A stretch of DNA of 63,197 nt, filler included, from Trichosphaerium sp. ATCC 40318 (Eukaryota > Protista > Tubulinea): assembly GCA_038496445.1 (NCBI GenBank). It is 3 parts of 3 records of this genome, joined end to end, with 100 filler letters (N's around TTAATTAATTAA, not from the genome) between each part and the next. Parts side by side here need not be neighbours in the genome. Positions count along the whole stretch, not along the records: positions 1 to 25,172 come from JALMLS010000582.1; 2 more parts are not named here. The stretch is one strand, 5' to 3'. This document shows positions 1,102-24,436 of this stretch, piece after piece; position 1 is the first letter of the stretch, and each line of letters starts with the position of its first letter. The notes beneath the pieces are model-generated. The model was not told where the DNA came from and made no database searches. It saw only the letters and a program-made list of their open reading frames with translations. Made by a program: the position numbers and the translations under genes.

Positions 1102-2496
1102 ATGGCTAGTACTCAAACTACCCTACAGGCAAAGCTTGATAGGCTCAAAGACGCAACTGCAAAGTTAGGTACATAGCGATATGATTATTGTTTCCCCTCG
1201 GTGTTATTAAGGAGTTATAACGTTATGATAGCGCAAAATGTACCAAATGATCCAAACAGCGCATTTATATTCGCTGCTCAAAGGAGAGCTTAATACAATA
1301 AATGAACTCCTAAAAGACGTTAACACAAATGTCAACGCAAAAGATGAAGAGTCAATGACAGCGCTTCATTGGGCAGCTGCTTATAACGAGCCAAGGGTTG
1401 TAGACGCTTTGCTGAATGACAAACGTGTTGATCCTAATGTGCCTAACAAAAGGCAAAATACGCCATTACATCAAGCTGCGATGTACGGTAAGTAATCAAC
1501 CCAATTCTTTTAGTCGTTTTAATGACATGTTGTCAAAACAAGGTTCTGCGTTGTCAGCTGAGCGTCTACTAAAGGATTCACGCGTGAAGATAGATGCATG
1601 CAACGAATGGGGTGAAACTCCGCTTTTTCTGGTACGAGCGCCAAAAATGGTAGCAACGTCTAACATAACTCTAGGCTGCAAACGGTGCTAACAAAGAGGT
1701 TTGTGACCTAAACCCTTTAAAAAACCCTGGAACGTTACGCATTCTAAACTGCTCAATAGGTCATGTTGTCTCTTCTCAAAGGTGGTGCCGACTACAAGAT
1801 AAAAGATAAATGGAATAGAACACCATCAGAGGCTGCTAAGGAACACGGAGAAACGGAAATAAGCGAAGTAATAAAATCTTTTATTGCCGGAACCTATGTA
1901 CCCAAAGATGAAAGTAAAACTCAGCCGGTACCAAAGAAATCCGGTGTAAAAGGTAGAAAGAGAATCTTAAGCAAAATGATGGAAGCACCATTAAGTACAG
2001 AGAAGTTCTTGGGGTGGCTCAAAGAAGATGACATTGATATCTTGGGATGCGATATGTACAAGTGGACGGCACTTCATAAACTTGCTTCGTGGAACAAGTC
2101 ACAATGTATAGAAGCAATGCTAAGCGACCCTCGTGTTGGTGAAGAGAATATTTCAAAGAAAGGTCAAGGAGGTGACACTCCTTTACATTGTGCTATTGAG
2201 ATGCATGCGTCTGCTTCTGTGGATGTTTTACTAAAAGACGAGAGGGTCAAAAAAAATATTAATGCTCTAAATGATAAAGGTCTTACTCCTGCTGATGTGG
2301 CTGTTAATTCAGGTAATCTTCAGCGCTGAGTATTTTAAAGGATCTTGGCGCTGTTTGTGGCAGTAGCGGAGGTACAGAAAAAGAATCTCACCTTCCTGAG
2401 CATTATGGAAAGACTGAGAAGCGCGCTGTCAAGAAATTAAATACAAATAAGTTTGCGGCTCTTGCAAAGGCAATGGGTAAACCAGCTCCAAAATAA
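1102..2496 (+). CDS. Ankyrin-repeat protein (multi-exon; one apparent 1-nt frameshift at ~2320)
   Basis: Repeated ankyrin motifs (MTALHWAAAYN, NTPLHQAAMYG, GETPLF, WTALHKLASWN, GDTPLHCAIE, GLTPADVA). GT-AG introns join the ORF-track fragments. ATG at 1102, TAA at 2494-2496. Confidence 0.85.
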
Positions 2497-2789
2497 ACTA
2501 TTTCCATTAACAATTGTGTACGCTAGGCTTTAAATACAAGGTTTTTTAGACACCTTGGCTAGCAAAGTTTGTTGGTACCTGCCTAGACTTAACCGGTTTT
2601 CTAAGACCGCCCTATTTAAATATTGGCTCTTCTTAAGAGCTTGAATAGTAATAGCTGCTATCTCGTTGAATCGTGTATTTGTAAGTAATTTTGGTCACGT
2701 GTACCTAAGTCAGTTTGTTGACAGCGTTTTGACACTTGTTGATTAACTTATCAAAAGATTGCGGTTTAACCAACATCAGCTGTTACAAT

Positions 2790-5700
2790 ATGGATAAGCT
2801 TTGCTCAGTACGAACGAAGGATGGCAGACTCCTGGAGATCAAAGAGTGCTCTATTCGCGTAGATATATGGGGTTTTCTCGCAAAAACAACCGTTCAGGTT
2901 CTTTTACAACCGTTTTACCAACTTTGTCACCGGAAGAACCTAAATACCTATCTAGATGACCTTTTTTAATCGTGGAGACACTGAGGAAGAGGCAGAGTTG
3001 AATTTCCCCTTAAACGAAGGTGAGGATACAAACCAAAAACTTTCGCCAAACGAATCCAAACTTTTTCCTCGTTTCTTCACCTCTTAAGTGAATGAGATTA
3101 TCAATATGGCTACTCGAATGCTAAGAGTTTAATCTAGGTTCTACGGTTTGCGGTTACGCTTTAGATGTAAACGGTGTCATGGTAGACGGCGTAAGTGGTT
3201 GTTTGTTCGAATAAAAAAGTTAGTGTCTTGAAATGCTTACTTTACTACATAGGTTGTAGTCCCTAAAAATCAAACTAGAGCTGCTTTTGAAACCTCAGAA
3301 AGGACTAACAATAATACTTGTGGTATGGTTGAACACGTGCGAGGAAACGTGTACAAAACACGTATCTACCCAGTTCCTAAAAAGTAAGATAAAACCAAGA
3401 AAGCTTAAAACCTGACAACAAAAAAGGGGTTCTCGAGCTGTTAGACTTGTATTCTCTTCGCCTTTGAAGGTACAAGAAAAACGAAGACAAGGACAAGCAA
3501 CTAAGGAACTTGAATACAATTTCCCGCTTCAATTTGTTGAAAGGATTCCTTCTTATTCCGTTCTAGCGAATGTGAGTGCTTACACTATGCATGTTTTACC
3601 ACTAATTGACTCGTTTAGGTGTCCAGTGACTGTGGCATTAAACCAACTAAGTTTAGTTGTAATGGCAAGCCAGTAACCTTCTCGAAAGGTCATCAGGTAC
3701 ATTGTAGTGAATATACAAGATATGTCTGTTCTCTTATTAACGAGCTACAAAGGGTCATTCAGGTCATTTTGAGCAAAAAGATATATCTGCAAATTGCAGT
3801 ATAATCATACGTGCTACAACAGATGAACCTCTACTATTGGTTGAAAAAGACAGTAAAACAAGGACTGTTTTTTTCTCATTGATGGACATTGTTTCTGAAC
3901 AAAAAACCAGTAAGCCAAGGTACTGTGAAGATAGTCTGCGTTTACAACGTTAACTGATGCTTTTTTGTAGAATTGGTTCAGTTGTGAATCACTTGCTTGT
4001 TCTATGGGATGCTTCGCTTAGTCAACAGAACAACAACTGTTTGGAATCATTGAAAAGAATATGTTCATCACTTGGCAAAGTGGTTGTCGACATAATACCG
4101 TTTCGCAATGAACCAGATGCAATGACTTCGTTTGATGTGTCTCATAGCACTTCCGAAATGGAGAACTTCCTGAACAACATTGTATACGATGGAGGTAAGT
4201 CACGTGACCTAGTAACGATTCTCACTTAGTATCTAGCCAGCGCTTTCTATAATCTACACGCGAGAGCATTGAACAAGAGTGGTACAGCCTATAAGGCTTG
4301 TCTTCTGTTTACGAACGGATTCGCAACAATAGGTACTGCGTTTGCAAATTTGCGTATTCTAAAGCGCAACAGGTCCTCTTGAGCTTGGAAGTAGCGAGTT
4401 ACGTGTATTCTCATTCTCTCATGATAAAGAAGTAAATCATGATGGTTTGAGGAAGATATCTAAAGCTTCTGGTGGCGTATACACCAATTTGAAGGCAAAC
4501 ACAAGATTATGTAGTTTGCACTTATACTAATGTTTGTCTTTAGTCATCTGTGAACTTTTCTTCTCTTGCTGCGTCTATTCTCAATGTCCAGAACCAATTT
4601 TCTTTGTTGCGTATTGAAAGAGGTGATAATTGCGTTACCGATGTGTACCCCAAGCGAAAAGAGGCTGTCAGTCAAGACCAGACTGTCATGGTTGTAGGAA
4701 AACTGAGTGCTAGCACCAATCTGAAGCTTTGTACAGCTTATTTGTTTGTAGCACTACTAACCATTCGTAGGCTATGGCTATACCAGTGAATCAATCATTG
4801 CCCATGAGTTTAAAGTAGATGTCAAGGAAGTGAAACGAGGCAGATTTCTTGGAAGGCTATGGGCTCAAAAGAGAATCTCAGGTTTGTAACAAATTACTAA
4901 TGTCTCCAGCTTACATTTTTAGATATCCAAGAAGATGCCAATAATAACGAGCGCCTTGCGAAAGAAATGATAAGTTTAAGTACTATGTATGGAATCGTTA
5001 CGCCAAAGACATCTATGCTGGTACTTGAGTCAGTTATGCAATACGTCAAGTACGAAATACCACCTCCAAAGATGTTACCCGGTAAGAAATTTCTTACACG
5101 TGCTTAATTTACTTAACTGTTAGATATGAGAGCAACTTATTTTGCAATAATGAACGCCCAAATTAAGGATAAAAAGGATGAAAAAGAAGAGCGGATTCAG
5201 TACGTCTTATCTCTTTGGAATAGAAGAGTCGGTATGTAAAAATACTCAAAGGTTCTTTGTTTATTCACTAAAACATTAGCTTGGTGGGGTGAGAGTGGTG
5301 GAAATGTTTCATTGGCTCAGCACCATTTAGATTACAATATTGAACTAGAGACTAAGCATTCATGCGTTCGTACGTAAATCTATCAACAAGCCAAACCTTA
5401 ACACTTCGTTAAACAAGATGATTTTACCAATGTTCCTCAAATCTTGCGTATGCCTGAAGACCAACCTTCAGTGATGGCTGCAGAAATTAAACAAGATGAA
5501 TATGATCCTGAATTATTGGTAGCCATGGGTATTAATCAATCAGACATAACAGAAATCTTCAGTGTACAAAAAATATTCTTCCCCAATAATAACAAATTTC
5601 GACAGATGTTTGATAAAGATGGGGATGATGAGCTCACCAAAGGCGATATACATTCTTTAATGAGTGGATTGGGAGAAGCTCTTAGTTCTGCAGAGGTATG

Positions 5701-8598
5701 AAAGTACTGATTCTTGAAACAACTAACTTTTAAGGCTGCTGAGCTAGCACAAGGTCTCAATGCCCTTAAAACGAAACATCTGAAAAAACAAAGAGATACA
5801 AGTCCAAGTAGTAGGAGAGTTGTCAAGAAGGGAGGGAAATTGAATCGCATTTATCAACCACTAGTGCTACAAAGAAAAGTAGCAGAACAATACAATGACA
5901 TTGAAACGTCAATTTCTGCTTTGCCTTCTAGTACTTCATCCGAAGTTGTTGATCGTAGTCTGGCAGCCTATATGATACCTCTATCAGCATCTGAGGAACC
6001 ACAACGTGAATTCTCACGTAAACGAATAAGGGGAAGACCGCTTAAGAAAAAGGCGGAAAAGAGATCCGTACCACAAGAAGTCCAACCAATTACCACGTCA
6101 GATACCAATACAGTCGAAAAACGTACAACATGCCTTTTTAGTAATGATATTTACTTTTTATTCTTATTATAGGTAAGGCAATGAGTGTTAAAGCAGGAGA
6201 TGTTATTGTCGTAAACGGAAAAGAAATAACTATTCAAAAAGTACGAAGATCTCGCCCTGGTAAGCATGGACCAGCGAAGGTTGCTGTTGTAGGTACGTAA
6301 TGTTTCTACTATTTTCATTTCGTGCTATTGAATCGTGTTTATTCAAATCACGTGATGGATTTTCGTAGGCATAGATTCGTCCGGAAAAAAAGTAGAACAG
6401 TTAAAAAGGAGTAATGATAGCTTCAACATTAAGGCTGGAAACACAAAGAAAACTGAATCTATTGAATCAAGGGATGACAGGGTCATACCTAAGACCGCAG
6501 CTAGTAATAAAAGTACGTTATCACGTGAGTGTTGCTTATTTTGATTTTTAAAGACAAGCACAAAAGAAGGAGATCTGCTAAGAGATCAGAAAGTAACCTA
6601 TCGTCGTCCACAAGCTATAGCCCTAGATTTGATACTACAACGCCAACACTGGGCGCCACAATAGAAGTAGATGTATGAATTTCTTTTTCTTTCTTTGTGT
6701 TGACTGTATTAGGGCAAAGTTATGAAAGTTGGCGCAGTCAGATATGCCAAAGCAGGAAAGCACGGAATCCGAAAGGCATGCTAGCATACTGTGCAAATCA
6801 GCTCATAGTTCTACTAGAGATTCATACAAGGAACTGATGTTGTTACTGGTAAGAAAGTTACTACCATACAACGTGCTACTATTCCAGTAAAACAGTTAAT
6901 AATGGAAGAACAGAAAGAGGGTAAGCCAGAATTTTGTTCACAACGTTTTTTTTATTGACATGTTTCCTTTAAGAAGATCATTCCTCAAGTGCATCAAGTA
7001 GTGATGCAGAAGGGTCTGATAGCCCAGAGTCAGAGGTTGTCGAAGACATCAGTCAGAAATATGCATCTGAAGACAAGTATGATGACTTTATGATAAACGT
7101 TGTCGATGACTTCGTTGAATCAGAAGAGGAGCAAGATAGTTTTCAAAGTAAGATTAAATCAACAAATTCCTTCCAGACTATTCTCTTAAACCACTTTAAA
7201 ATAGGCGATTTATATTCTTCCATGCCCACAAGCGCTTTTAATAATATGGAAGAGATTATTGCGTCTCTTAAAGACAATGATACCTCATACGGTGCTCCTC
7301 AACCGGTGATCTCTTTCACGACATCAAAAAATGCTCAACGAAAAGTATCAGCAACTCAAGCCTACTCTGTACATCCTTCATTCCTACCAATCACATTGCT
7401 AACTTTCCACCAGGATTACTTGCGTTTAAGAACAGAAAAATCTGGTCCTGAATTCTACTTTGACGCAGCATGCTCATTTTTTGAAATGGGTCACGTTAAC
7501 CTAGGAATTCGCATCTTATCAAATCTTGCTGAGATTGATCTGGATAACCCACATTTTCTACGCATACTAGCAAGAAAATTACAAGAGCAAAATGTACGTT
7601 AGTACTATTGCTTGTTTCAAGAACTAATAGTTTATGAAGGATGTTGATAGTGTTGTTTGTCATGTTCTTGAGAAAGTACAAGAACTTCGACCTGAGGAGC
7701 CTCAAAGTTGTAGAGATCTTGCTGAAGTATTAATCAAGAGAAAAGATCTTAATAAGGCTGTAAGAGTTTTATATGATATAGTTGAAAAGAAATGGGACAA
7801 CCGCTTTGCACAAATCGAGGTCATTGCTCTGATGTACAAGTTTTTTTCTGTTCTGTTTCTGCGTTTTTTTCTTAGTATTTGTATTAAGGGATCTAAATGC
7901 ACTTTTACATCGTGTCAAAGATATCAATATGCTTGCACCGCCTCATTTAAGAGTCAACTATGATTTTGTTGACCCAAGATTAATAACGAACTTACCGGTC
8001 GATATCAGAGTCGTCTTACAATGGGTATACTAGTTTAGTACATCTTTTTTCTAAAGACGTCTGTAGCATACCGACAAAACCGATGTAGAATTGCACGTGA
8101 CTGAACCTAACGGTGATAAGTGCTACAGTTTCAACAACAGAACATTAGCTGGAGGCTTATTATCTAAAGACTGCGCTGCAGGGTATGGAAAGCTAAAAAA
8201 TCCAAAATATACTTAGTGCTCGTACTACAAGTTATGGCTAACTTTTTTCAAGATATGGCCCAGAAGAGTACTTGATACGCTCTGCACAGTATGGTAATTA
8301 CCAAGTATCCGTTAAACTATTCCATGCACGTCGTGTTACTGCTCTTGGAACTGTACGCTAAAACCTTTATGATATGTTCTTTTTTTTTCCTACAGATTTT
8401 AACTATCCCAATGTCATAGATTGCCACAGTGTCTGTTTACACTAACTTCGGCACTCCTCAACAAAATGTTACGAGGTTCGTAAAAAGTCTTCTACCTACT
8501 ATGACATCTGAACTGCTCACGGGGTTTTTACAAGGCATAGCGTAAAGCTTACAAAGAATAAGGAGGTCCTAAATGTTGCATCAATTAATTGGAATTGA
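2790..8598 (+). CDS. Large multi-exon VIT / vWA-like / EF-hand / 2x eIF5A-like / TPR / DUF2135(YfaP)-like protein
   Basis: N-terminus resembles VIT (IRVDIWGFLAKTTVQ..TFFNRGDTEEEAELNFPL..STVCGYALDVNGVMVDG..GNVYKTRIYP). MIDAS-like WDASLS, then GRFLGRLWAQKRI and YGIVTPKTSMLVLE. EF-hand MFDKDGDDELTKGDI. TPR-like RILSNLAEIDLDNP..LRPEEPQSCRDLA. C-terminus DIRVVLQW..TDVELHVTEPNGDKC..YGPEEYLIR. TGA at 8596-8598. Confidence 0.8.
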
Positions 8599-9510
8599 GT
8601 TGCCACTTCGTTAAGTCCCACTAATAATGATTCTCTGACATATGGTTTATGCTTGTTTTGGTTGTAGGCAAGGTTCAAAAATAAAGGTTGGTACATTGTT
8701 CGGGCTTAATCTTTTATTAAAGAACAAGTATGTCGTCATGTGCGTATACGTATACTATGCTATGAATGTACAGGTATTGGTATTGTGTTGGTGGTGTTTG
8801 CTGTACACGGTTTTTTGGGTATTTGTCTATAAGCCCATCTGAAAAGAAAGACACGCCTACTACGACAGTAATAGCTACTGCCAGTATGACTAAAACAAGT
8901 GATACTAAAATCCTTGGCACCTGAGATCTAGTATTAACCTAAAAACCCAGCACTCGTTTCGATAACACCGCAGATATAACTTCATTACTGAGCGCATAAA
9001 ATGCACCTATTTGCTGTCCTAATGATCTAAAAGCATTATGGAACTCCCTGCAGCGAGGTCTTATGTCTTTGATGATGATAAATACGTCCAAACAAGTTCT
9101 TTTGTCATTGTTTTTTGCCCTGAAAAAAAGTGAAAACACGTGATGAATCGGGATTTATAGAGTTGGGTGCGAAAATAAGTTGTTATTGTACTGTTATAGA
9201 CATTACAGCGGGACTCAAAATACGCTAGACAGAAGGAGAAAAAGCAAGCTGGGCGTTCATTTTGTGTTTTCTGTTTTGCCTGTTTCAAAAGTAACATTAA
9301 GATTCTGTTAATGATCCGAGATTTTACGGGCTGTGTGAGTCCGAAGATATAACGCTATAACCTGTGTATATAATAGACCTAACGTATATATAGCACCTTG
9401 TTTGTTATACCCTCTGGTATATTTAGAATTTCGGAACATCTCCGCACCTTAGATGTTGTCGGATTGCTTAATTGTTTTTGCGTCTTTATTAAACACACAG
9501 CAACACGTTA

Positions 9511-10208: not shown

Positions 10209-12038
10209 ATGTCAAACAATTCGAATGACCAGATGATGCAAATCCTGTTAAACCTACAGTCACAGATGCAACAGACTCAGAATGAGATGCAGCGACAGGG
10301 TCAGGTTATAGCAAATTTATCACAACGGGATCAGCCATCTACGAAGTCTCCTACTATTTCTGCGACGACTTCACCTTACCGACAACCATCGAGTTTTCTA
10401 TACGCTACACCTCACATTATGGCACAGCGACAACATCAAAGACAGATGCAGTATCTGTCTACACAACCTCAGATGACTCCTTTCTTGCCGAGAACGCAGA
10501 TGCAATATCAATCGACTGGTCAACAATTACAATCTGTACCACGAACTGCAACAGTACAGCAGCCGATGCCAAGGCCTCCAACAACACCGTTTGTTTCAAG
10601 GAAAGCCACTGTCACCACGACGACAGTGAAAAAGAAGAAGCAAGTTCCAAAGAAGAAGGACGTTCCAAAGAAAAAGAGCGTACCAAAAGAAAAAATAAAA
10701 AGAAGGTTTATCCTCCCTACAAAGATTCCTGTGGAGACAGGAAAGGTTACAAAACTTTGGAACAACGCTTTTGATGAAGCAAAGAAGAATATTCAACCGG
10801 GTATATTGGATAGTCAAGCTACGAAAGAACAAGTCGCTGATCGTGATAAAATTTACAAACAAAATCAACATAATTATGCTGTTCAGTATTTTGGTAATCT
10901 CTGTGTTGCTTATGCTAGAGAGATAGCACAGACAGAGTTAGACAAGTTCTTTGCTAGAGAGGGTAAAGAAGAAGAATCAATCAGTGACTCAGAGAGCGAG
11001 TCAGATGAAGATGATAAGGATGATGATGATGAAGATGATGATTCATTCGACTTTACAGAAATTCGCAAAGCTTTACCTGAAGATTCTACGTCGACATCAA
11101 ATCCTTTACCACAGCCTAACTTTGGTACTAATCCTATTGTTCCTCAAGTACAGCCTTACATGATGCCACAATACCAAATGCCAATGCCAGGTTATCCAAA
11201 TATTATCACCAACAACGCGAGTGATAATGAAATTTTCTTTTATGGAAAACCAGGTGAAAATGTATTAAGATGGATTGCTGATATATCCGCTGTTGCCACA
11301 CGTAGCCCTACAACTGTTCAGATGTTTATTGGGCTTATTGAGAAAAACCTTAAAGGATTCGCGAAGGATTATTACAAAGATCAATTTCCTGGTGGCGCTG
11401 TTGAAGGACAAGAAAATGAAGTTTTCGAGAAACTTCAAAATTATTTTTCATCTGAAGTAACTAGAGAAGGACTCCGACATGCCTTTAAGAGTTACGTTCA
11501 AGATCAACTACCTGTGTTACAATACGCAGCTAGAAAAGGAAAGAAAGCGAACGATGCCGGTTATCATATCAACCATCAGACGCGTATCAAATATTTTATT
11601 AAGGGACTTAACCCTGAAATACAAGAACATTTGAGGAAAGAACGATACAAGTGGAATGATTGGTCAGAATGTGTTACCAGAGCACATCATATCGAAGCGG
11701 CAATCAATGATACCAAGAAAGCCGTTGGAGATAAGAAAAAAGATAAGAAGCCAAAGCCAAAGCCGAAACCAAAAACGAAAACCGGTGATGAACAATCTGA
11801 TAAGACGAAAGCTGATTGGTCTGATCCGAATGTGCAACCAAATCCTAGAACTCATTGGTGTGTACATCACAAGAAATGGAGTTATCATACCTCCTACAAA
11901 TGCGAATTGAATCCGAAGGTCATAGCGAGAAAAAAGAGAAGAGCTGAAAGAAAGAAGAAAGCTGAAGAAGAAAACAAAGACGTCACAGTTGCTTCTGTCA
12001 AGACTGAAGACTCAGGTGAAGATTCGGGAAACGAGTAA
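10209..12038 (+). CDS. gag: Retrotransposon Gag
   Basis: 609-aa ORF. Capsid-like FYGKPGENVLRWI...LKGFAKDYY...FIKGLNPEIQ. C-terminal C-x2-H-x5-H-x4-C knuckle (CVHHKKWSYHTSYKC). Confidence 0.9.
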   Translation: MSNNSNDQMMQILLNLQSQMQQTQNEMQRQGQVIANLSQRDQPSTKSPTISATTSPYRQPSSFLYATPHIMAQRQHQRQMQYLSTQPQMTPFLPRTQMQYQSTGQQLQSVPRTATVQQPMPRPPTTPFVSRKATVTTTTVKKKKQVPKKKDVPKKKSVPKEKIKRRFILPTKIPVETGKVTKLWNNAFDEAKKNIQPGILDSQATKEQVADRDKIYKQNQHNYAVQYFGNLCVAYAREIAQTELDKFFAREGKEEESISDSESESDEDDKDDDDEDDDSFDFTEIRKALPEDSTSTSNPLPQPNFGTNPIVPQVQPYMMPQYQMPMPGYPNIITNNASDNEIFFYGKPGENVLRWIADISAVATRSPTTVQMFIGLIEKNLKGFAKDYYKDQFPGGAVEGQENEVFEKLQNYFSSEVTREGLRHAFKSYVQDQLPVLQYAARKGKKANDAGYHINHQTRIKYFIKGLNPEIQEHLRKERYKWNDWSECVTRAHHIEAAINDTKKAVGDKKKDKKPKPKPKPKTKTGDEQSDKTKADWSDPNVQPNPRTHWCVHHKKWSYHTSYKCELNPKVIARKKRRAERKKKAEEENKDVTVASVKTEDSGEDSGNE

Positions 12039-12091
12039 ATGACATTGCGTCTGGCTCAAGCAATGTCACTCGTAAACATACTCCAGAGCCA
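12026..12091 (+). promoter_or_regulatory. -1 programmed ribosomal frameshift signal (G GGA AAC plus stem/pseudoknot)
   Basis: Slippery heptamer at 12026-12032, just before the gag stop. 7-nt spacer, then stem TGACATTGC/GCAATGTCA. Loop TGGCTC is complementary to downstream GAGCCA. The -1 frame is open into the protease. Confidence 0.85.
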
Positions 12092-13424
12092 TTTGGAGAT
12101 GTAACAACACACAATAAAGAAGTTAGATCAAAACGTGTTGTCAATTCTCCAAGCCCTCCTTCTTATGTCCTGGCCCATATAAATCAAGCTCCTATAGTGT
12201 CATATTTGGATGGTGGATGCGATAAATCTATCATTCATTCTTCTTTTCTTAACAACTTACCGGAAGTAGAAGTACTATCAACAACTGCGCAAGCGAGTAC
12301 ATTGAATTCTAACAAATTCAAGTTGGATGGTATTGTTTCCGTCTCACTTTCCTTTGGAAATCAAGAACAAAGATTAGTAGAGCTATACGTGACATCAGAT
12401 ATGGAAGAAGTCTTGGTTATTGGACGAGATCTTCAAGAAAAATTTAACATGAGCGTCAACTATGCAAAGAGAACCGTTACTTTCGCAGATGATTCAACTA
12501 TTCCGATTATTAATCAATCGAATAAAGAAGGCGAAGTTCGTCTCCTATATTCAAGAGATCAGATACAAATATATCCTAAAGAGACAGTGATCCTGACTAT
12601 GAAGTTCCGTAGTCAATTACCAGATGGAACTGTTGGAATCATCACACCGGTTGGCCCTATATGGAAAAGAACTAGATTAGTTACTGGACCTATTATATCA
12701 GTGATTAATAATGGTCATTGTGTTATGCAAATGACAAACTTGTCTGAAAAGACGATAAATATTCAACCAGGTCAACGACTTGGTAAATTTCAAACTCAGA
12801 AGTCTAAAATGCTGGTTAGAGGATTAAGAACAATCGAACAGATTAATGAATACAAAGCAACTCAAGCGGAGCTAGATTTGGTGGAAGAATACTTTGGTGA
12901 GCAACTCAAGGAATGTGCTATCAAAGACGAAGAAGAACTTCATACTATTCGCAACCTATTGGCTACTCACTTGAAGTCATTCGACATAGCTTTAAACAAA
13001 CCTCCCAAGACGGCCGTACGCATGCATATTAATACTGGAGATTCACAACCAGTTGCTACGACTCCACGACGTTTTCCGAAGCGTTATGTTGAGTTTATCA
13101 GGAAATTTATTAAAGATTATTTGAAGACTGGACTGATCAGGCCTTCAACAAGCCCTTGGGCTTCACCCATAGTCATCGCTCCGAAGAAAGATGGTACATT
13201 GCGATTCTGTATCGATTATCATGGATTGAATGCAATTACTAAGAGAGATGTCTATCCTATTCCCAACATTGATGATGCTTTTGATGCATTGGTGGGAAGT
13301 CATTACTTTTCGGTAATGGATGCTTTGTCTGGGTTTCACCAATTGCAAATGGACGAAGCTTCAATTGAAAAGACAGCGTTTGTAGATCAATCAGGTCTAT
13401 ACGAGTGGACTGCAATGCCCTTTG

Positions 13425-14106
13425 ATTAATTTAGGTAAAAGATGGCTCTTTGTACCTATTATATAAAATCAAAAACCAAACAACCAAAAAATAGGTAAAA
13501 ACCAGCTTTGTGTGATCACAAGGTCAATGTAACACAGTGTGTCATCACAGACGACAACCTTGATACCAGATCAAGGTTGTCTAGGCTAGGTTTTATGTAG
13601 TATTAACTAATATTGTGCAATTTTCATAAAAATGGTTGTTCATGCCTTACATTATAAAATCATGGATGTTCAACCCTATGTAAAATAATGGTTGTTCAAC
13701 CCTATATAAAATAATGGACAGTCAACCCTATATAGAATATTGGATAGTCAACCCTATTACATGAACACTGTAGACACACCAACCGTCAGAATTAACCCAA
13801 CAATGAGCCATCACACATAAACACAACACAGTGTATCATCACAGACGGACAACCTTGATACCAGATCAAGGTTGACCTAGGCTAGGTACAACAAAACAAA
13901 AGTAACAAATAAAAAATAACAAAAAAAAACAAAGTCAAAAAATTATTGATAATGAGTTACAGTGGTTCTTTGCCCCTATTACAAGGTAACCGAATGCACA
14001 AGCCCAATCAACCATACAAACAGGCGTTAGAAACCACCATCATTAATCAGTCACTTCCACCCTATGCTCCAGCATTGCCATCCACATCCACATCCACACC
14101 CACACT
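13425..14106. mobile_element. 682-bp non-coding insertion in RT with 6-bp TSD CCTTTG
   Basis: CCTTTG at 13419-13424 and 14107-14112. Removing the insert and one TSD copy restores ATG CCC TTT GGG TTA ACG AAT GCA CCT (MPFGLTNAP). Confidence 0.9.
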
Positions 14107-16998
14107 CCTTTGGGTTAACGAATGCACCTGCTACTTGGCAACGCTATATGAACTTAGTCTTAGCGGGTCTCACCTGGCAGATCTGTTTAGTATACATTGA
14201 TGATATCATTGTATACTCTAAAGACTTTAAGACACACATTCAGAGATTGGATACCGTTTTAACGCAACTGGAGAAATTCAACGTTAAACTTAAACCAAAG
14301 AAATGCAAGTTCTTCATGAAGGAACTTAATTACTTAGGGCATGTAGTTACCAACAACGGAAGAAAACCTGATCCTGCAAAGATAGAGGCTATAGCTAGAA
14401 TGCCTCCTCCGAATGGAAAAAACTGACTAAAGCAACTCCAACGATTCTTGGTGATGATCAAGTATTATGGATGCTATGTCAATAACTTAGCTAAAAGATC
14501 ATATCATTTACGCATCCTAACTCATAAGAATGCTGAATGGGTATGGGGAAAAGAGCAACAAGATGCCTTTGAAGACCTCAGAAAGTGTTTAGTAACGGAA
14601 CCTATCGTATTGGCTTATCCAGATTTCGACAAAGAATTCGAACTTCACACTGACGCTTCAGATGAGGGACTATGTGCAATCTTAACTCAAAGAGAAGATG
14701 ATGGTAAAGAAAGAGTTGTGTCGTACTATTCACGATCACTCAACAAGGCTGAACGAAACTATTCAGCTTCCGTGAAGGAAGCGCTAGCGGTGGTGGCTGG
14801 TGTTAGAAAGTTTAGACCATACCTGTTATCTAAACATTTTACAATTTGGACAGATCATCAAGCTCTGGTTTGGTTCTACCAACACCAGAACCCTGATGGA
14901 AAAATGATTAGATGGTCTATATTTCTCTCAGCGTATGATTATACTATCAAACATAGACCTGGTGTAAGAAACGCTAATGCAGATACTGGGTCTCGGTCTC
15001 CTGTTATTTCTATTGAAGATGCTCCAAAGAAAGAATTCGAAGTCAACGAAATTTATACTCCTGTTATTCAAGCTAGAGGAGTTTCAATCTTTTCTGGACA
15101 TGTGGTCCACAAGAAACCAGTTCCAGAGCCGTTACTTCGATTATATTACTTACAAAGACAAGACGCTTTTATGAACAAACAGATTATGTATCTACAATCT
15201 CCTGATGTATTCAAATATTACAAAGATGTGGAACGTTTAACTAAAAGTACAAAAGATCTCTGTCTAGACGATTATGGTATACTCTGTCAGAGTTGGATAC
15301 CTCCAAAATCCCAACGATCCAATAAAACAGAAAGGATTCAAACAGTTGTTCCTACGCAGATGAGATTGGAACTTCTTAGATTAAACCATGATATTCCTAC
15401 ATCAGGACATCTAGCAGTTAAACGTACTTATCTTAAACTCATGGATAAGTACTGGTGGCCTAACATGTGGTTGGACGTTAACCAATATGTTAAAGGATGT
15501 ATACAATGCCAGACTAAGAAAATTGATCGTCGAAAGAAGCTAGGTGGACCGATGGGAACGGTAACTTCAAGATGCCCGATAGATGTTATTGCCGCTGATT
15601 TAATTACAAAGTTACCGCGTACCAGAAATGATAATGTTTGCATTCTGGTGGTTATGGATTACTTCACCAGATATGCTAAGTCCATTCCACTTCCAAACAA
15701 AAAGGCATCAACAATTGCACGTGCAATTTATGACGAATTTATATTGGAACATGGAACACCTAACGTATTTCTCTCCGATCAAGGTGGTGAATTTAAAAAC
15801 GTACTGAAGGAACTTATGAAGTTATTGAATGTCGACCAACGCCAAACTACAGCATATAAACCTCAAACGGATGGTCTAGTTGAAAGATTTAATGCTACCT
15901 TAGTCAATATGATAAAGATGTATTGTAATGACAATCAAACAGATTGGGATGAATATGTACGACCTTGCACATTCGCGTATAATACGTCAGTTCATGAAGA
16001 ATTAAAAGAAACACCTTATTTCCTTATGCATGGTAGAAGAGCAGTTTCGTCTTGGGATCAGGCTTTAGGACGAGTATCTACCAGATCAAAGGACAAATAC
16101 ATAAAAAACATTGCGAAAGTGATAAAGAAAACACATGAAACGTCAGCTATGCTTAGACAGAAAGCATATCAAAGACAGAAGAAACGGTATGATGAGAAGC
16201 ATCGTACCAAGACATTCTCTGTTGGACAAAAAGTTTATTTACGTGTTAACAAGAAACGTGATGTACCATGGGGTAAATCACGAAAGCTTTTTAAGAACTA
16301 TACTGGAGTATACTATATTGCTGAAGTTAAAGGACATCATAATTATCGTATTGGAGTCATGAATAAAGATGGTACTAAAGGACCTATCATCCCTGATGTC
16401 TATAACGTTGATCGACTCAAGGAGCACAATGAACAAATTTCCGGCGATACAGATAAATTAGTTCAAATAGTGGAAGCTATACCTGTTCTTTCCCCTGCAG
16501 AGAAAGCATATGCAAAAGAACAGGAAGAAAAAAATGCGACAAAGGATAGTAATCCTACTATCACTAAGAAAGTAAGCCCTTTTAAAGATGCTTTATTGGA
16601 AGTATACAATGCTGTTTCACAACGCTCTGAAGCGGGTTCTATTACGAAAAAGGTCTTACAGGTTTATAAAAATACATTACATGATCTTATCGCTGGCGAT
16701 CTTTCCATGTTTGTTACGAGAAATTCCAGAAGAAATTATTTCAAAGGACAATTAAAGAATGTTACCACAGTGAAAAAATTTCTGGATTATATGGATTCAC
16801 TCATTTCCAATTTCGAGACTATCTTTAAGCCTGAACTATAAAACGTATGGGTTCAGTTTGGAGGGGTATGCATTAGTATATGTGAGGTACAGTGTGATAA
16901 ATTAAAACTCATGTACATATTGTATGATATTCACGTGGTATGTAAAACCAAACCTCATGAACTAACTTATGTTTGGCGCTAACTCACTTACTGGGGTA

Positions 16999-18235: not shown

Positions 18236-18570
18236 TTTTTCAAGTTCAGTCCCTCTACATAAGGGATTTATTAAACAGTACGTCAGAACCCATATTGTTG
18301 CCCTTAAGTATTTGTAAGAGCGAAAAGACAGAAGTCATTCTTGTCCTTCCAATTTCAGTCAAAAATTGCCTATCACCATTGCTCCAATGGTTAAATCGGA
18401 GAAACCAAAAATAGAACTATTCAGATCTTAATTATATGAGCACGTGTAAATTATTTAGGAAGAAATAAGCGAAAATCAGGTGCGCTTGCACAAGAACTAT
18501 GAAATGTGACCTCAGCATTGAAACTTAACTACAGCAATTGTACATCATCGTTTACCCTGCCGGCGCTTCT

Positions 18571-19941
18571 ATGGAACCAAACCCGAAGGCTAAATTAAGT
18601 GGAAAGCACTTTAAAGATAAACCAGCAAATATCCATGTTTTAGACATTCCAACGGAACTCCTCGTTTGTTTACTCGAGTTTTTTGATGTTTCTAGTCGCT
18701 TTTCCGCATCTCGGACCTGTAAACTATTCTCAAACATCATACGCTACGTTGTTGGATACGGAACCATCAATATTAGATCGACAACATGGTGTTCTCGCCT
18801 CCGCGGGAGTCCTCTTCTCAAAAACACAAAAATATCGTTGAAGTTACGCAAAACCACAGACGACGATCTCGCTTACCTTACCGGAGTTCGCTCCCTCGAA
18901 CTAGCCAACTCTGATTACATTACAAAGAAAGGGTTCAAGTCCATCAGAGGTGTTCGTCACTTGAGCATCTCAAGATGTCCAAGGTTCAAAGACTCAAGCT
19001 TGAAACGTCTAGCGAAACACCTCAAATCCATTAGTCTGCATCAAGTTGACACAAGTGACACCACTTTGTGGCCTCGACCTGATGACGCATTGACAGATAA
19101 AGGTTTTAAAGCGCTTGCTGGCGTGCCTAAGGTCAGCATCCCCTATTCCAAAGTTACAGATGAAGCGTTGTACGTCATGGCTGGAGTACATACCATCAAC
19201 TTAGCTGGTACTTCAGTAACAGACAAAGGAATTAAGGCGTTGGCTGGAGTACATACCATAATTTTAAATAACTGCTATGGTATCACAGACGAAGGTATTT
19301 CAGCTCTTGCTGGAGTACACACTATAGACTTACATGACACTAAAGTATCAGATTCAGGTATTTCCGCGTTAGCTGGAGTGTACGATATTAACTTAGAATT
19401 TTGCCAACATATCACAGATAAAGGTGTTTCTTCTTTGGCCGGAGTACACGTGATAAACTTGAAAAAGTGTAGAGAAATAACAGATGAAGGCATAGTAGCA
19501 CTAGCTGGCGTACATACTATAGACTTAGCGGATACACATGTGACAGATAGAGGTATTTCGGCGTTGGCAGGTGTCCATACAATTAATTTGGGTGGTACTT
19601 CTGTTACAGATAGAGGAGTTATGGCGTTGTCTGGTGTACATAGTATATGCCTTTCTAATAATGAAGTTATCACAAAAGAGAGTATGAAAAGTCTGTCAAG
19701 TGTACACACACTTGATCTAAACGAAACTAATGTATCAGATGATTGGCTAATTCCGTTAACAAGACTAAAGGTGTTAAAGTTCACTAAGGTCACTAGATTC
19801 ACAGTTGGGTGCCTTAAAGCAATAATGGACAAAGGAGTAACAGTATTCTGCAAGAACCGCATTTTGACGACGATACCACGTGATGAGGGCAAAGATATTT
19901 GTGAGTCAAGTCGTGGCGTAGTTTTTTATTTTAATAGCTAG
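18571..19941 (+). CDS. F-box plus leucine-rich-repeat protein, intronless
   Basis: F-box ILDIP-like motif VLDIPTELLVCLLEFFDVSSRFSASRTCKLF. About 10 repeats of 21-22 aa (AGVHTIxLxxTxVTDxGIxAL). Confidence 0.9.
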   Translation: MEPNPKAKLSGKHFKDKPANIHVLDIPTELLVCLLEFFDVSSRFSASRTCKLFSNIIRYVVGYGTINIRSTTWCSRLRGSPLLKNTKISLKLRKTTDDDLAYLTGVRSLELANSDYITKKGFKSIRGVRHLSISRCPRFKDSSLKRLAKHLKSISLHQVDTSDTTLWPRPDDALTDKGFKALAGVPKVSIPYSKVTDEALYVMAGVHTINLAGTSVTDKGIKALAGVHTIILNNCYGITDEGISALAGVHTIDLHDTKVSDSGISALAGVYDINLEFCQHITDKGVSSLAGVHVINLKKCREITDEGIVALAGVHTIDLADTHVTDRGISALAGVHTINLGGTSVTDRGVMALSGVHSICLSNNEVITKESMKSLSSVHTLDLNETNVSDDWLIPLTRLKVLKFTKVTRFTVGCLKAIMDKGVTVFCKNRILTTIPRDEGKDICESSRGVVFYFNS

Positions 19942-22670: not shown

Positions 22671-24199
22671 TCACAAAAAGTCACGTATAGTGTACGATTG
22701 GTATGGTGAATGTTGTTCTAGATGTTCATATGCAGGTTTTTTTCCATTAATTATTAAAGTACCACAAGACCAAACAAAGAAATAAGACATTCTTGCTGAA
22801 ACAGAATCACATTTGCAATGCTTAAGAGGTCCAAATAAATACAAGATACCATAATCACTGATAAGAGGACAATCATTTGCAGTCAAATTAGTGACTCCAT
22901 AGAGAGATATAATGCTGTCATCCGTAATATTTTGACATCCAGAAATATCAAGTTTTTCTACACCAACAAGATATTTTAATCCTTTATCTGTAATTTCACT
23001 ACAATTAACCAAACTGACATCACGTGCTCCTGAAATATACTTCAAACCTTCATCTGTTATAAAAAAACAGTGATCAAGTTTTATCTCTGAAACACCTCCC
23101 AGTGCTTTCAAAGACAAGTCGGTAATTAATGTGCAATTTTTTAGATTTATCTTGTATACTCCACGTAATGCTGAGACACCTTCATCAGTGATATAGTCAC
23201 AGCCACTTAGTGATATTGTGTGAACACCTGCAAGGTATGATATACCCAATGAAGTCACATTGAAACAGTTATCTAATAGAATTGTATGTACACCTTTAAG
23301 ACACTTAAGACCAATATCTGTTATAAATGTATCACAAATGTCGATTGTGTGAACTCCTGATAGCGCCTTCATACACTTATCACCAATGTTACAACGATTC
23401 AAGTTGATAGTGTGTATACCAGAAAGCGCTGATACACCTTTATCAGTGATATAAGGATTCCTGTGGATAATAAGCTTTTTAACACCTGCAAGTGCTTTCA
23501 ATCCAACATCTGTCAGATTATTTGATCCAAAGTTGTATCCAATAGGAGCAAGCTTTGCTTCTTTGACACCTGCCAAAGATGCGTATCCTTCGTCAGATAC
23601 TTTGTCACAGTTACTGATTCTTATTGTTTTAACACCAGCAAGTGCTCCAACACCTTTGTTAGTGATGTTGTTGCAAAAAGATAAGTCAATGGTTGGCACT
23701 CTAGAAATAGCTTCCAGATGACTGTCAGTAACACACTCCCAATCAATGATATTTCTTTGAGTCTAGAGAGTGATTTTAGACCTTTTGGAGTGATTATTTC
23801 ATTAGGAACAAAGGAAAGCTTGGTAATATTTGTAAGCGCTGACAAACCAACATCCGTGATTGTACTGCGACCAATATCTAGTGTGCGGACGTTTCCGAAG
23901 TGTGTTATGACCTCATCGCTGATTTTTCTGATGTCCATCCTCAGATTATACGCTCCGTGAAGAAGAATGGCTATTTCTGGCCTCAATAGCATTGGTACAT
24001 GAATATGGGTTGACTTTAAAAGTCCTTTGCTCTTGCAGAGGTCCAGTACGTTGTAATTTTTTGCGTCAATGTTAGCAAAGCCAATATCATTTCGTACTAC
24101 GTGTAGAAACTGTTTACAGGTCAAAGAGATAGATTTCAGATTTGAAGTGCGTAAGAACATCAGGATTTCGCATACCATCTCTCGTGGTAGCGATGACAT
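22671..24199 (-). CDS. F-box plus LRR protein, intronless, with a 1-nt frameshift at ~23733 (error or pseudogene)
   Basis: MSSLPREMVCEILMFL...TCKQF F-box. Same GVHTIxL..ITDxGL repeats as 18571-19941. Two overlapping ORFs join at GS(x)VTDSHLEAISRVPTIDLS. Confidence 0.85.
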
Positions 24200-24436
24200 A
24201 AAGCAAGTCATTTACGCAACACGTTGTAAGAATTGTTTTGAACGAGCTTTGACCAGCATTGGGTAAAAAAAACTGCCAAAAAGATTGTCGGCGGTTCTGA
24301 GGCGCTTCAATGCAGGTCAGACTCTGGGCATGGATCTCTCGTATCCTGCTGTTACTTGTTAGGTGGAGTAATTCCATAACCACAATAGTATAATGATTGC
24401 TCGTGGTTTTTATTTGGTTTTTTTTTTGATACAATT

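Follow-up and report, generated by a model that had tools for sequence, protein, structure and literature searches.

The window analysed here is a stretch of 63,197 nucleotides (nt), filler included, from Trichosphaerium sp. ATCC 40318 (GCA_038496445.1), of which positions 1-25,172 correspond to record JALMLS010000582.1. This DNA has about 38% GC and is rich in introns of 40-120 nt. One gene in this piece encodes a large protein into which two tandem copies of the N-terminal domain of the translation factor eIF5A are built, each with an intact G-K-H-G hypusine loop. The gene and the elements of its eIF5A-like region, with lengths in amino acids (aa) where proteins are meant, are as follows.

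2790-8598 (+): host gene of about 30 exons, modelled as a 1,421-aa protein with VIT, vWA-like, variable slot, TPR-like and DUF2135 parts
6123-6172 (+): GT..AG intron of 50 nt between the upstream slot exon and module 1, inferred, outside the listed RNA joints
6175-6421 (+): eIF5A N-domain module 1 (aa 824-880), split by intron 6293-6368 (an RNA joint); identified by PF21485, phmmer against PDB, AlphaFold2 (AF2) and Foldseek
6259-6270 (+): G-K-H-G loop of module 1 (GGT AAG CAT GGA), Lys codon 6262-6264, within X1 record 6
6422-6642 (+): inter-module linker, basic and of low complexity, 60 aa, containing intron 6513-6553
6643-6889 (+): eIF5A N-domain module 2 (aa 941-995), split by introns 6673-6712 and 6776-6817 (GC..AG), both RNA joints
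6755-6766 (+): G-K-H-G loop of module 2 (GGA AAG CAC GGA), Lys codon 6758-6760, an invariant column in the module alignments

Direct reading of the spliced frame gave the loop as R-P-G-K-H-G-P-A-K in module 1 and as K-A-G-K-H-G-I-R-K in module 2, and the peptides, frames and lysine codons that the initial annotation had quoted for 6173-6900 were reproduced in this way. G-K-H-G occurs twice in the six-frame translation of the 25-kb piece, both times in these modules. Against the Pfam profile PF21485 (IF5A-like_N; curated cutoff 27.1 bits, profile length 63), spliced module 1 scored 36.0 bits (E 6.3e-9, profile positions 8-61/63), above the cutoff, and its first exon alone reached 25.8 bits. Module 2 scored 26.6 bits (E 5.4e-6, profile positions 19-59/63), which lies 0.5 bit below the cutoff and is borderline by sequence alone. 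With scores of this size on both segments, a chance origin of the modules is ruled out. All phmmer matches of module 1 to PDB sequences at E<=0.05 were eIF5A or aIF5A, with the eukaryotic proteins best and G-K-H-G lying on G-K-H-G, and the lysine codon 6262-6264 aligned with the hypusinated Lys50 of human eIF5A.

The fold of both segments agreed with these matches. AF2 models built from 5-row alignments were all-beta, with a predicted local distance difference test (pLDDT) of 86 for module 1 and 88 for module 2. The top 50 Foldseek matches in PDB belonged exclusively to the eIF5A/aIF5A/EF-P family (EfpL and Cth-95 included) and were aligned over domain I, with root-mean-square deviations of 1.3-3.0 Å and a TMq that ranged from 0.69 to 0.82 in module 1 and from 0.61 to 0.79 in module 2. 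Module 1 matched eIF5A domain I at TMq 0.75-0.82, and the leading matches of module 2 lay at 0.67-0.79. Among them were eIF5A chains from complexes with deoxyhypusine synthase (DHS), namely 8a0e_E, 8put_E and 8qzx_E. Both modules are strongly basic, with net charges of +9 and +8. As regards structure, it is near certain that both segments are true eIF5A N-domains with the SH3-like fold and an intact hypusine loop. The initial annotation had proposed two eIF5A-like domains with intact G-K-H-G inside a large protein that is not a translation factor, and this proposal is borne out by profile, PDB-sequence and fold matches to domain I of eIF5A as well as by the spliced contigs and the orthologue described below, with module 2 just under the profile cutoff.

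Like eIF5A and aIF5A, the modules combine the fold, sequence homology to PF21485, a basic surface and a K/R-x-G-K-H-G-x-x-K loop, and their closest relatives are the eukaryotic eIF5As. Unlike eIF5A, which stands alone at about 155 aa, they are arranged in tandem between disordered linkers of a protein of about 1,421 aa and are not followed by the C-terminal OB domain. The profile of that domain (PF01287) found no match in the linker exons, which gave no Pfam match at all, or in the whole of the orthologous protein P0119.

The splicing of this region was followed in RNA contigs from two runs (X1 and X2) of one study, which are 150-460 nt long, are 95-99% identical to the window and were aligned to positions 2700-8650. 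Over this interval the contigs contain 13 joints, all with GT..AG ends except the GC..AG joint at 6776-6817, and because the joints carry such ends, the contigs derive from spliced RNA of a close relative or another strain. Introns 6293-6368, 6513-6553, 6673-6712 and 6776-6817 are all present as joints, and one contig (X1 record 6, 460 nt) spans about 6244 to 6905 and crosses all four; therefore both G-K-H-G loops lie in one frame on one contig. Over 6244-6905 the relative carries just two changes against the window, a substitution and a 3-nt deletion that preserves the frame, and both are in the inter-module linker. Neither skipping of these exons nor another frame was found, as the spliced contig keeps the frame proposed in the initial annotation. 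Of the five introns claimed there, four are thus confirmed as RNA joints, and the fifth, 6123-6172, is deduced from frame continuity, being the sole stop-free continuation found, and from colinearity with the orthologue. The region 6173-6900 belongs to one expressed gene, of which the RNA contigs each cover a part. The GC..AG intron at 6776-6817, situated inside module 2, is confirmed by its RNA joint, and the remaining RNA-supported introns are GT..AG. Further downstream, 7369-7413 (+), a stop-free segment of 45 nt and hence a multiple of three, is removed in an RNA contig of the relative, and a part of it (7393-7413), if kept, aligns with Arcella residues; this segment may be an optional in-frame intron.

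The gene model was built by fixing the RNA-supported introns and taking the shortest stop-free GT..AG path, which was then corrected by homology in 2 places. Accordingly, 13 introns of the host gene are joints in spliced contigs, and the other 16, including 6123-6172, follow the stop-free GT..AG path guided by the Arcella orthologue. A model with the fewest introns was dropped in favour of this shortest-intron path fixed by RNA joints and Arcella homology. The exon borders of the vWA region are partly approximate in the model, and its spliced C-terminus passes the Pfam DUF2135 cutoff, which gives further support for the gene model.

The orthologue emerged from an exhaustive search with the 209-aa exon. 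This search produced 117 weak matches, to the TPR part, and a single one of the 117 (P0056) carries G-K-H-G in an eIF5A-like context, twice. P0056 is a Trinity transcript of the testate amoeba Arcella intermedia (EukProt EP01124, TRINITY_DN5886), and a longer isoform of it (P0119, 1,191 aa) comprises a partial VIT, a vWA-like part, two IF5A-like_N modules (89.8 bits), a TPR-like part and a DUF2135-like end. It shares the domain order of the window protein, with the two modules in the same position, and the window gene is colinear with it over 3253-8355. The Arcella loops are canonical (SSKTGKHGS), and module 1 of Arcella matches PDB eIF5A at E 2e-10. Conservation of G-K-H-G in an orthologue is hence established by two canonical loops within the same architecture. 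Unlike the window protein, the Arcella protein has fully canonical loops and no EF-hand-like insert, and its acidic stretch is placed just before module 1 rather than just after module 2.

The transcript also bears on a trivial explanation, namely that the fusion is an artefact produced by mis-assembly or by a gene model that wrongly joined a VIT/vWA gene to a small eIF5A-like gene. Such an error could hide at intron 6123-6172 or where module 2 connects to the acidic exon (6921-6973), both of which lie outside the listed RNA joints, and the shortness of the RNA contigs leaves room for it. Between the parts, however, the spliced frame has neither a start nor a stop codon, and in the independent Trinity transcript of Arcella, which is colinear with the window gene, a single open reading frame (ORF) extends from VIT across both modules as far as the DUF2135-like end. 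Because of this independent transcript, an artefact is very unlikely, to the point of being hardly credible.

Comparison of the two species further revealed where the protein is constrained. The window protein and its Arcella counterpart are 35.6% identical over the VIT/vWA core and 43.7% over the TPR-DUF2135 region, with values of 38.6% for module 1 and 35.2% for module 2, as opposed to 11.7% for the linker between the modules and 16.9% for the acidic stretch. Six residues, in human numbering K/R47, G49, K50, H51, G52 and K55, are kept in all four modules of the two species, at an overall identity of about 30-35% among the four copies, and the four also share the G and K of the following G-K-K turn. 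The loop is invariant as well in P0121, a metagenomic sequence described below. These identity figures and the invariant loop columns place the modules and the core domains under equal constraint, with the exposed loop more strongly constrained. These numbers also speak to the idea of a neutral relic, in which exon shuffling would have left a piece of eIF5A in a disordered slot without function. The remainder of the slot is indeed poorly conserved and of low complexity, and the modules are known from two species only. But a relic would not be expected to be conserved like the core domains while its flanking linkers are not, to keep its loop residues invariant in 4 of 4 copies at such overall divergence, or to fold with high confidence in both AF2 models, and this account is highly improbable.

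Wider searches were made for further carriers. The two-module region of Arcella, searched against 5.8 billion protein clusters, returned only Arcella itself and P0121, and no further long protein like P0119; scans of a genome-contig collection gave no match, nor did a metagenome scan, for which the module exon was too short as a query; and a protein-atlas feature search yielded only short eIF5A fragments and TPR/DUF2135 clusters. P0121 is a 326-aa ORF at 280-1260 of a 1.9-kb GC-rich ENA metagenome contig (L001), which has an Ala/Gly-rich N-terminal part and ends in a canonical eIF5A N-domain (76 bits, SSSKTGKHGS). No OB domain was seen downstream of this N-domain on the contig. P0121 was not counted as a second fusion, given that its upstream Ala/Gly-rich part may be an over-extended ORF before the first exon of an eIF5A. 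Alternatively, P0121 could represent another fusion that has the N-domain alone.

The rest of the host protein was characterised by its own features, listed here in the order of the gene.

4008-4022 (+): DxSxS motif (D-A-S-L-S) of the MIDAS type in the vWA-like region, by direct reading; D-C-S-Y-S is aligned in Arcella
5612-5647 (+): EF-hand-like loop DKDGDDELTKGD, with weak Pfam EF-hand_7/EF-hand_6 matches (E 0.009-0.02), gapped against P0119 and absent from Arcella
6905-7143 (+): strongly acidic stretch that directly follows module 2, with a net charge of about -18 in 70 aa
7414-7889 (+): TPR-like helical region, TPR_19 at E 0.0012 and 19.6 bits against a cutoff of 25 (sub-threshold)
8284-8565 (+): DUF2135 (PF09906), spliced over introns 8353-8419 and 8476-8534, 28.4 bits against a cutoff of 22, profile positions 1-48/48

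In phmmer searches the full model matched P0119 at E 1e-151. Metagenomic or bacterial family members, about 1,000 aa long, were matched over two blocks of the model (aa 15-590 and 1130-1420) with E-values from 1e-129 to 1e-98, and the family members aligned to the model have strong VIT and DUF2135 matches. VIT (PF08487) was detected with exon 3253-3381 alone at 17.2 bits (E 0.006, profile positions 60-100), below the Pfam cutoff on single exons, and model aa 9-596 align with residues 34-598 of P0006, whose VIT scores 81 bits. At the thresholds applied, no Pfam vWA model matched the homologues or the exons of the window gene, and the vWA label derives from the DxSxS motif and the names given to homologues by their sources. 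The TPR-like region is the best conserved part across the family, and TPR_9 reached 19 bits in Arcella against a cutoff of 35. Thus, among the domain labels of the initial annotation, DUF2135 is confirmed by its profile score and VIT is supported by the partial exon match and the homologue alignment, and TPR stands as a weak Pfam match and vWA as a motif with inherited names. The gene product is a large cytoplasmic-type scaffold of VIT, vWA-like, variable slot, TPR-like and DUF2135 parts. Between its two chassis blocks, the slot of about 540 aa contains in order the EF-hand-like loop, a basic stretch, module 1, the basic linker, module 2 and the acidic stretch. Amoebozoa have cytoplasmic VIT/vWA proteins, such as Vwa1 of Dictyostelium (PMC10539598), and the words eIF5A, hypusine, TPR and DUF2135 are absent from the Vwa1 paper (PMC10539598).

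The family to which this chassis belongs is mostly metagenomic or bacterial (matches P0002-P0117). In an unrooted tree of the TPR-DUF2135 region with 80 rows, a clade supported at 100/99 unites the window protein with Arcella and an Amoeba-like fragment (P0027). The clade is nested in this otherwise metagenomic and bacterial family, a placement that would agree with an ancient transfer from bacteria and a later gain of introns. The bacterial VIT-vWA-(slot)-TPR-DUF2135 proteins share the chassis and have their variable slot in the same position. In 62 family members, a census of the 320 aa that precede the TPR part recovered CarboxypepD_reg-type modules in 11, TonB_C in 2, Plug in 2 and Secretin/STN in 1, together with one ubiquitin-like module (Amoeba proteus P0001) and one IF5A-like_N match (Arcella); therefore the chassis carries differing small modules at one position. 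The window protein thereby differs from the bacterial members, whose slots hold CarboxypepD_reg, TonB_C, Plug or secretin-type modules, and from the Amoeba proteus protein. The latter (EukProt EP01126) has its ubiquitin-like match (PF00240, 26.6 bits) at the slot, after a long repetitive Glu/Lys-rich region. In the lineage of the window gene, the slot captured two copies of the eukaryotic eIF5A N-terminal SH3-like domain without the C-terminal OB domain. The bacterial slot modules are of types known for docking to envelope machines, and by analogy the eIF5A modules may be viewed as the adaptor of this lineage.

What the captured modules could do is best approached from the enzyme that recognises eIF5A. 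According to a cryo-electron microscopy study of the human DHS-eIF5A complex, the enzyme touches eIF5A only at the three-stranded sheet of the N-domain and at the loop 46-SKTGKHGHA-54, the C-domain making no contact; nearly the whole N-domain is required for modification, and the positively charged N-domain faces an acidic patch of DHS (PMC10042821). Since DHS contacts only sheet and loop of the N-domain, the modules are most likely recognised by the enzyme. In the proposed mechanism, each module would be recognised by DHS, the G-K-H-G lysine of each would be converted to deoxyhypusine or hypusine, and the chassis would be anchored through the modified loops, as docking heads, to a partner of eIF5A, most plausibly the ribosomal E site with the P-tRNA end, or alternatively DHS itself. 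The docking-head idea mirrors the other slot modules, namely the ubiquitin-like one in Amoeba proteus and TonB_C, Plug and CarboxypepD_reg in bacteria, which suggests a docking role by analogy.

The known precedent for an eIF5A copy outside translation is Hex1, the Woronin-body protein of filamentous ascomycetes, which is without the hypusine domain (PMC4838825). The window protein resembles Hex1 in that an eIF5A copy was recruited to a purpose other than translation, and differs from it in keeping an intact loop and only the N-domain. Hex1 is a stand-alone protein that retains both eIF5A domains. That the loop was kept in the window protein and Arcella after deep divergence, while Hex1 lost the hypusine domain, argues that the loop is used. 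Judged from the sequences, DHS recognition and (deoxy)hypusination of the modules is the most likely reading, with a probability close to but not above even, and the explanation as a whole, DHS-modified modules serving as docking heads, is given about an even chance. It is somewhat less probable, and is put forward tentatively, that the window protein and its Arcella orthologue are genuine second DHS substrates which carry two hypusines each on a non-translation scaffold and thereby dock a vWA/TPR machine to ribosomes or couple it to polyamine status. Ribosome docking through the modified loops is speculative.

Several observations weigh against modification and docking. Position 48, Thr in eIF5A and in Arcella, is Pro in module 1 and Ala in module 2 of the window, and the clinical variant T48N was singled out in the discussion of the DHS interface (PMC10042821). 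Module 1 and both Arcella modules are one residue short in the hairpin after G-I-D, and the profile score of module 2 is borderline. Each module is tethered at both ends within a protein of about 1,400 aa, and this embedding could keep it from entering the DHS tunnel or the E site. In eIF5A, a portion of the C-domain contributes to ribosome binding as well (PMC10042821), and this domain is absent here. No gene for DHS or deoxyhypusine hydroxylase (DOHH) is visible in the window. Moreover, the fusion is so far carried by two species only, so the evidence from conservation is thin.

The same modules could instead be unmodified binding domains, i.e., basic adaptors for RNA or protein (rRNA or tRNA, uL1 or an exportin, for example) in which the loop was kept for contact and DHS never acts. 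The model for this comes from Nmd3, the export adapter of the 60S subunit, whose eIF5A-like domain attaches to the large subunit at uL1 and the E site (PMC6795138). As in Nmd3, an eIF5A-shaped module is built into a larger protein; unlike Nmd3, whose eIF5A likeness was described from ribosome structures, the window modules are sequence homologues with an intact loop. We know of no G-K-H-G loop or hypusine on record for Nmd3, and it illustrates how an eIF5A-like domain binds uL1 and the E site without hypusine. The strongly basic character of the modules and the resemblance of other slot modules in the family to docking domains agree with such a role. So does the conservation of positions 47 and 49, which, as Cano and co-workers reportedly found in 2008, matter for the activity of eIF5A and not for DHS. 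What this account explains poorly is that the exposed G-K-H-G together with K55 is exactly the DHS/DOHH recognition loop, the one lost in Hex1, and that with DHS present in the cell a free-standing, loop-bearing N-domain would be hard to keep unmodified, DHS needing only the N-domain. Unmodified adaptors are hence somewhat unlikely.

A further account treats the modules as pseudo-substrates or decoys, which would sequester, recruit or sense DHS or would be bait for microbial effectors that target eIF5A, with the vWA/TPR chassis signalling. Two tandem copies on flexible linkers suit avidity and would offer two heads to the tetrameric DHS, an acidic stretch adjoins the basic modules, and the slot modules are swappable; amoebae, in addition, live under heavy pressure from intracellular bacteria. 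Contrarily, Pfam scans found no known immune or effector domain in the chassis, literature searches gave no effector that targets the hypusine loop, and at the sequence level a decoy and a true substrate look alike. A decoy function is considered unlikely, and (deoxy)hypusination by DHS is kept as the preferred reading.

The significance of the fusion follows from the narrow range of hypusine biology. In reviews and recent papers, after about forty years, eIF5A is still called the only known hypusine protein. A 2026 protocol describes hypusination as a modification long taken to be confined to eIF5A and names candidates (e.g., RIPK1) from probe labelling, without proof of the site; these candidate substrates from chemical proteomics are recent and have no recognisable DHS-binding domain. 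The literature search retrieved no paper on a fusion of an eIF5A domain with VIT/vWA or DUF2135 proteins, in line with the initial annotation, which knew of no such fusion on record, and the Arcella sequence is an unannotated transcript for which the searches likewise gave no description. The domain itself is known, and what is new is the conserved architecture in which it stands. It offers a clean natural test case, in which a complete DHS-recognition domain with its loop intact occurs twice in a protein otherwise unlinked to translation, in two amoebal lineages, and the question of a second hypusinated protein becomes directly testable. If the modules are indeed second substrates, eIF5A would for the first time be joined by another natural protein with the canonical recognition domain. 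Modified modules would mean that the hypusine system can be redeployed and would provide a handle on the role of the loop away from the C-domain of eIF5A; unmodified ones would show what DHS needs in vivo beyond the N-domain, or would reveal a natural DHS-binding pseudo-substrate. The bacterial-type VIT/vWA/DUF2135 chassis that swaps adaptors in one slot also hints at the role of an uncharacterised family.

The neighbourhood of the host gene contains several other genes. Just upstream lies an ankyrin-repeat ORF at 1763-2329 (+), with an Ank_2 match of 48 bits. Downstream, 10209-16841 (+) consists of long intronless ORFs that match dUTPase, reverse transcriptase, RNase H, integrase zinc-binding and integrase core profiles, the first ORF of the run (609 aa) being without a Pfam match, and it looks like a Ty3/gypsy-type long terminal repeat (LTR) retroelement. 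Two genes of the F-box plus leucine-rich-repeat type (LRR_6) follow in opposite orientation at 18538-19941 (+) and 22671-24211 (-). In Dictyostelium, an F-box protein is reported to work with a cytoplasmic VIT/vWA protein (PMC10539598).

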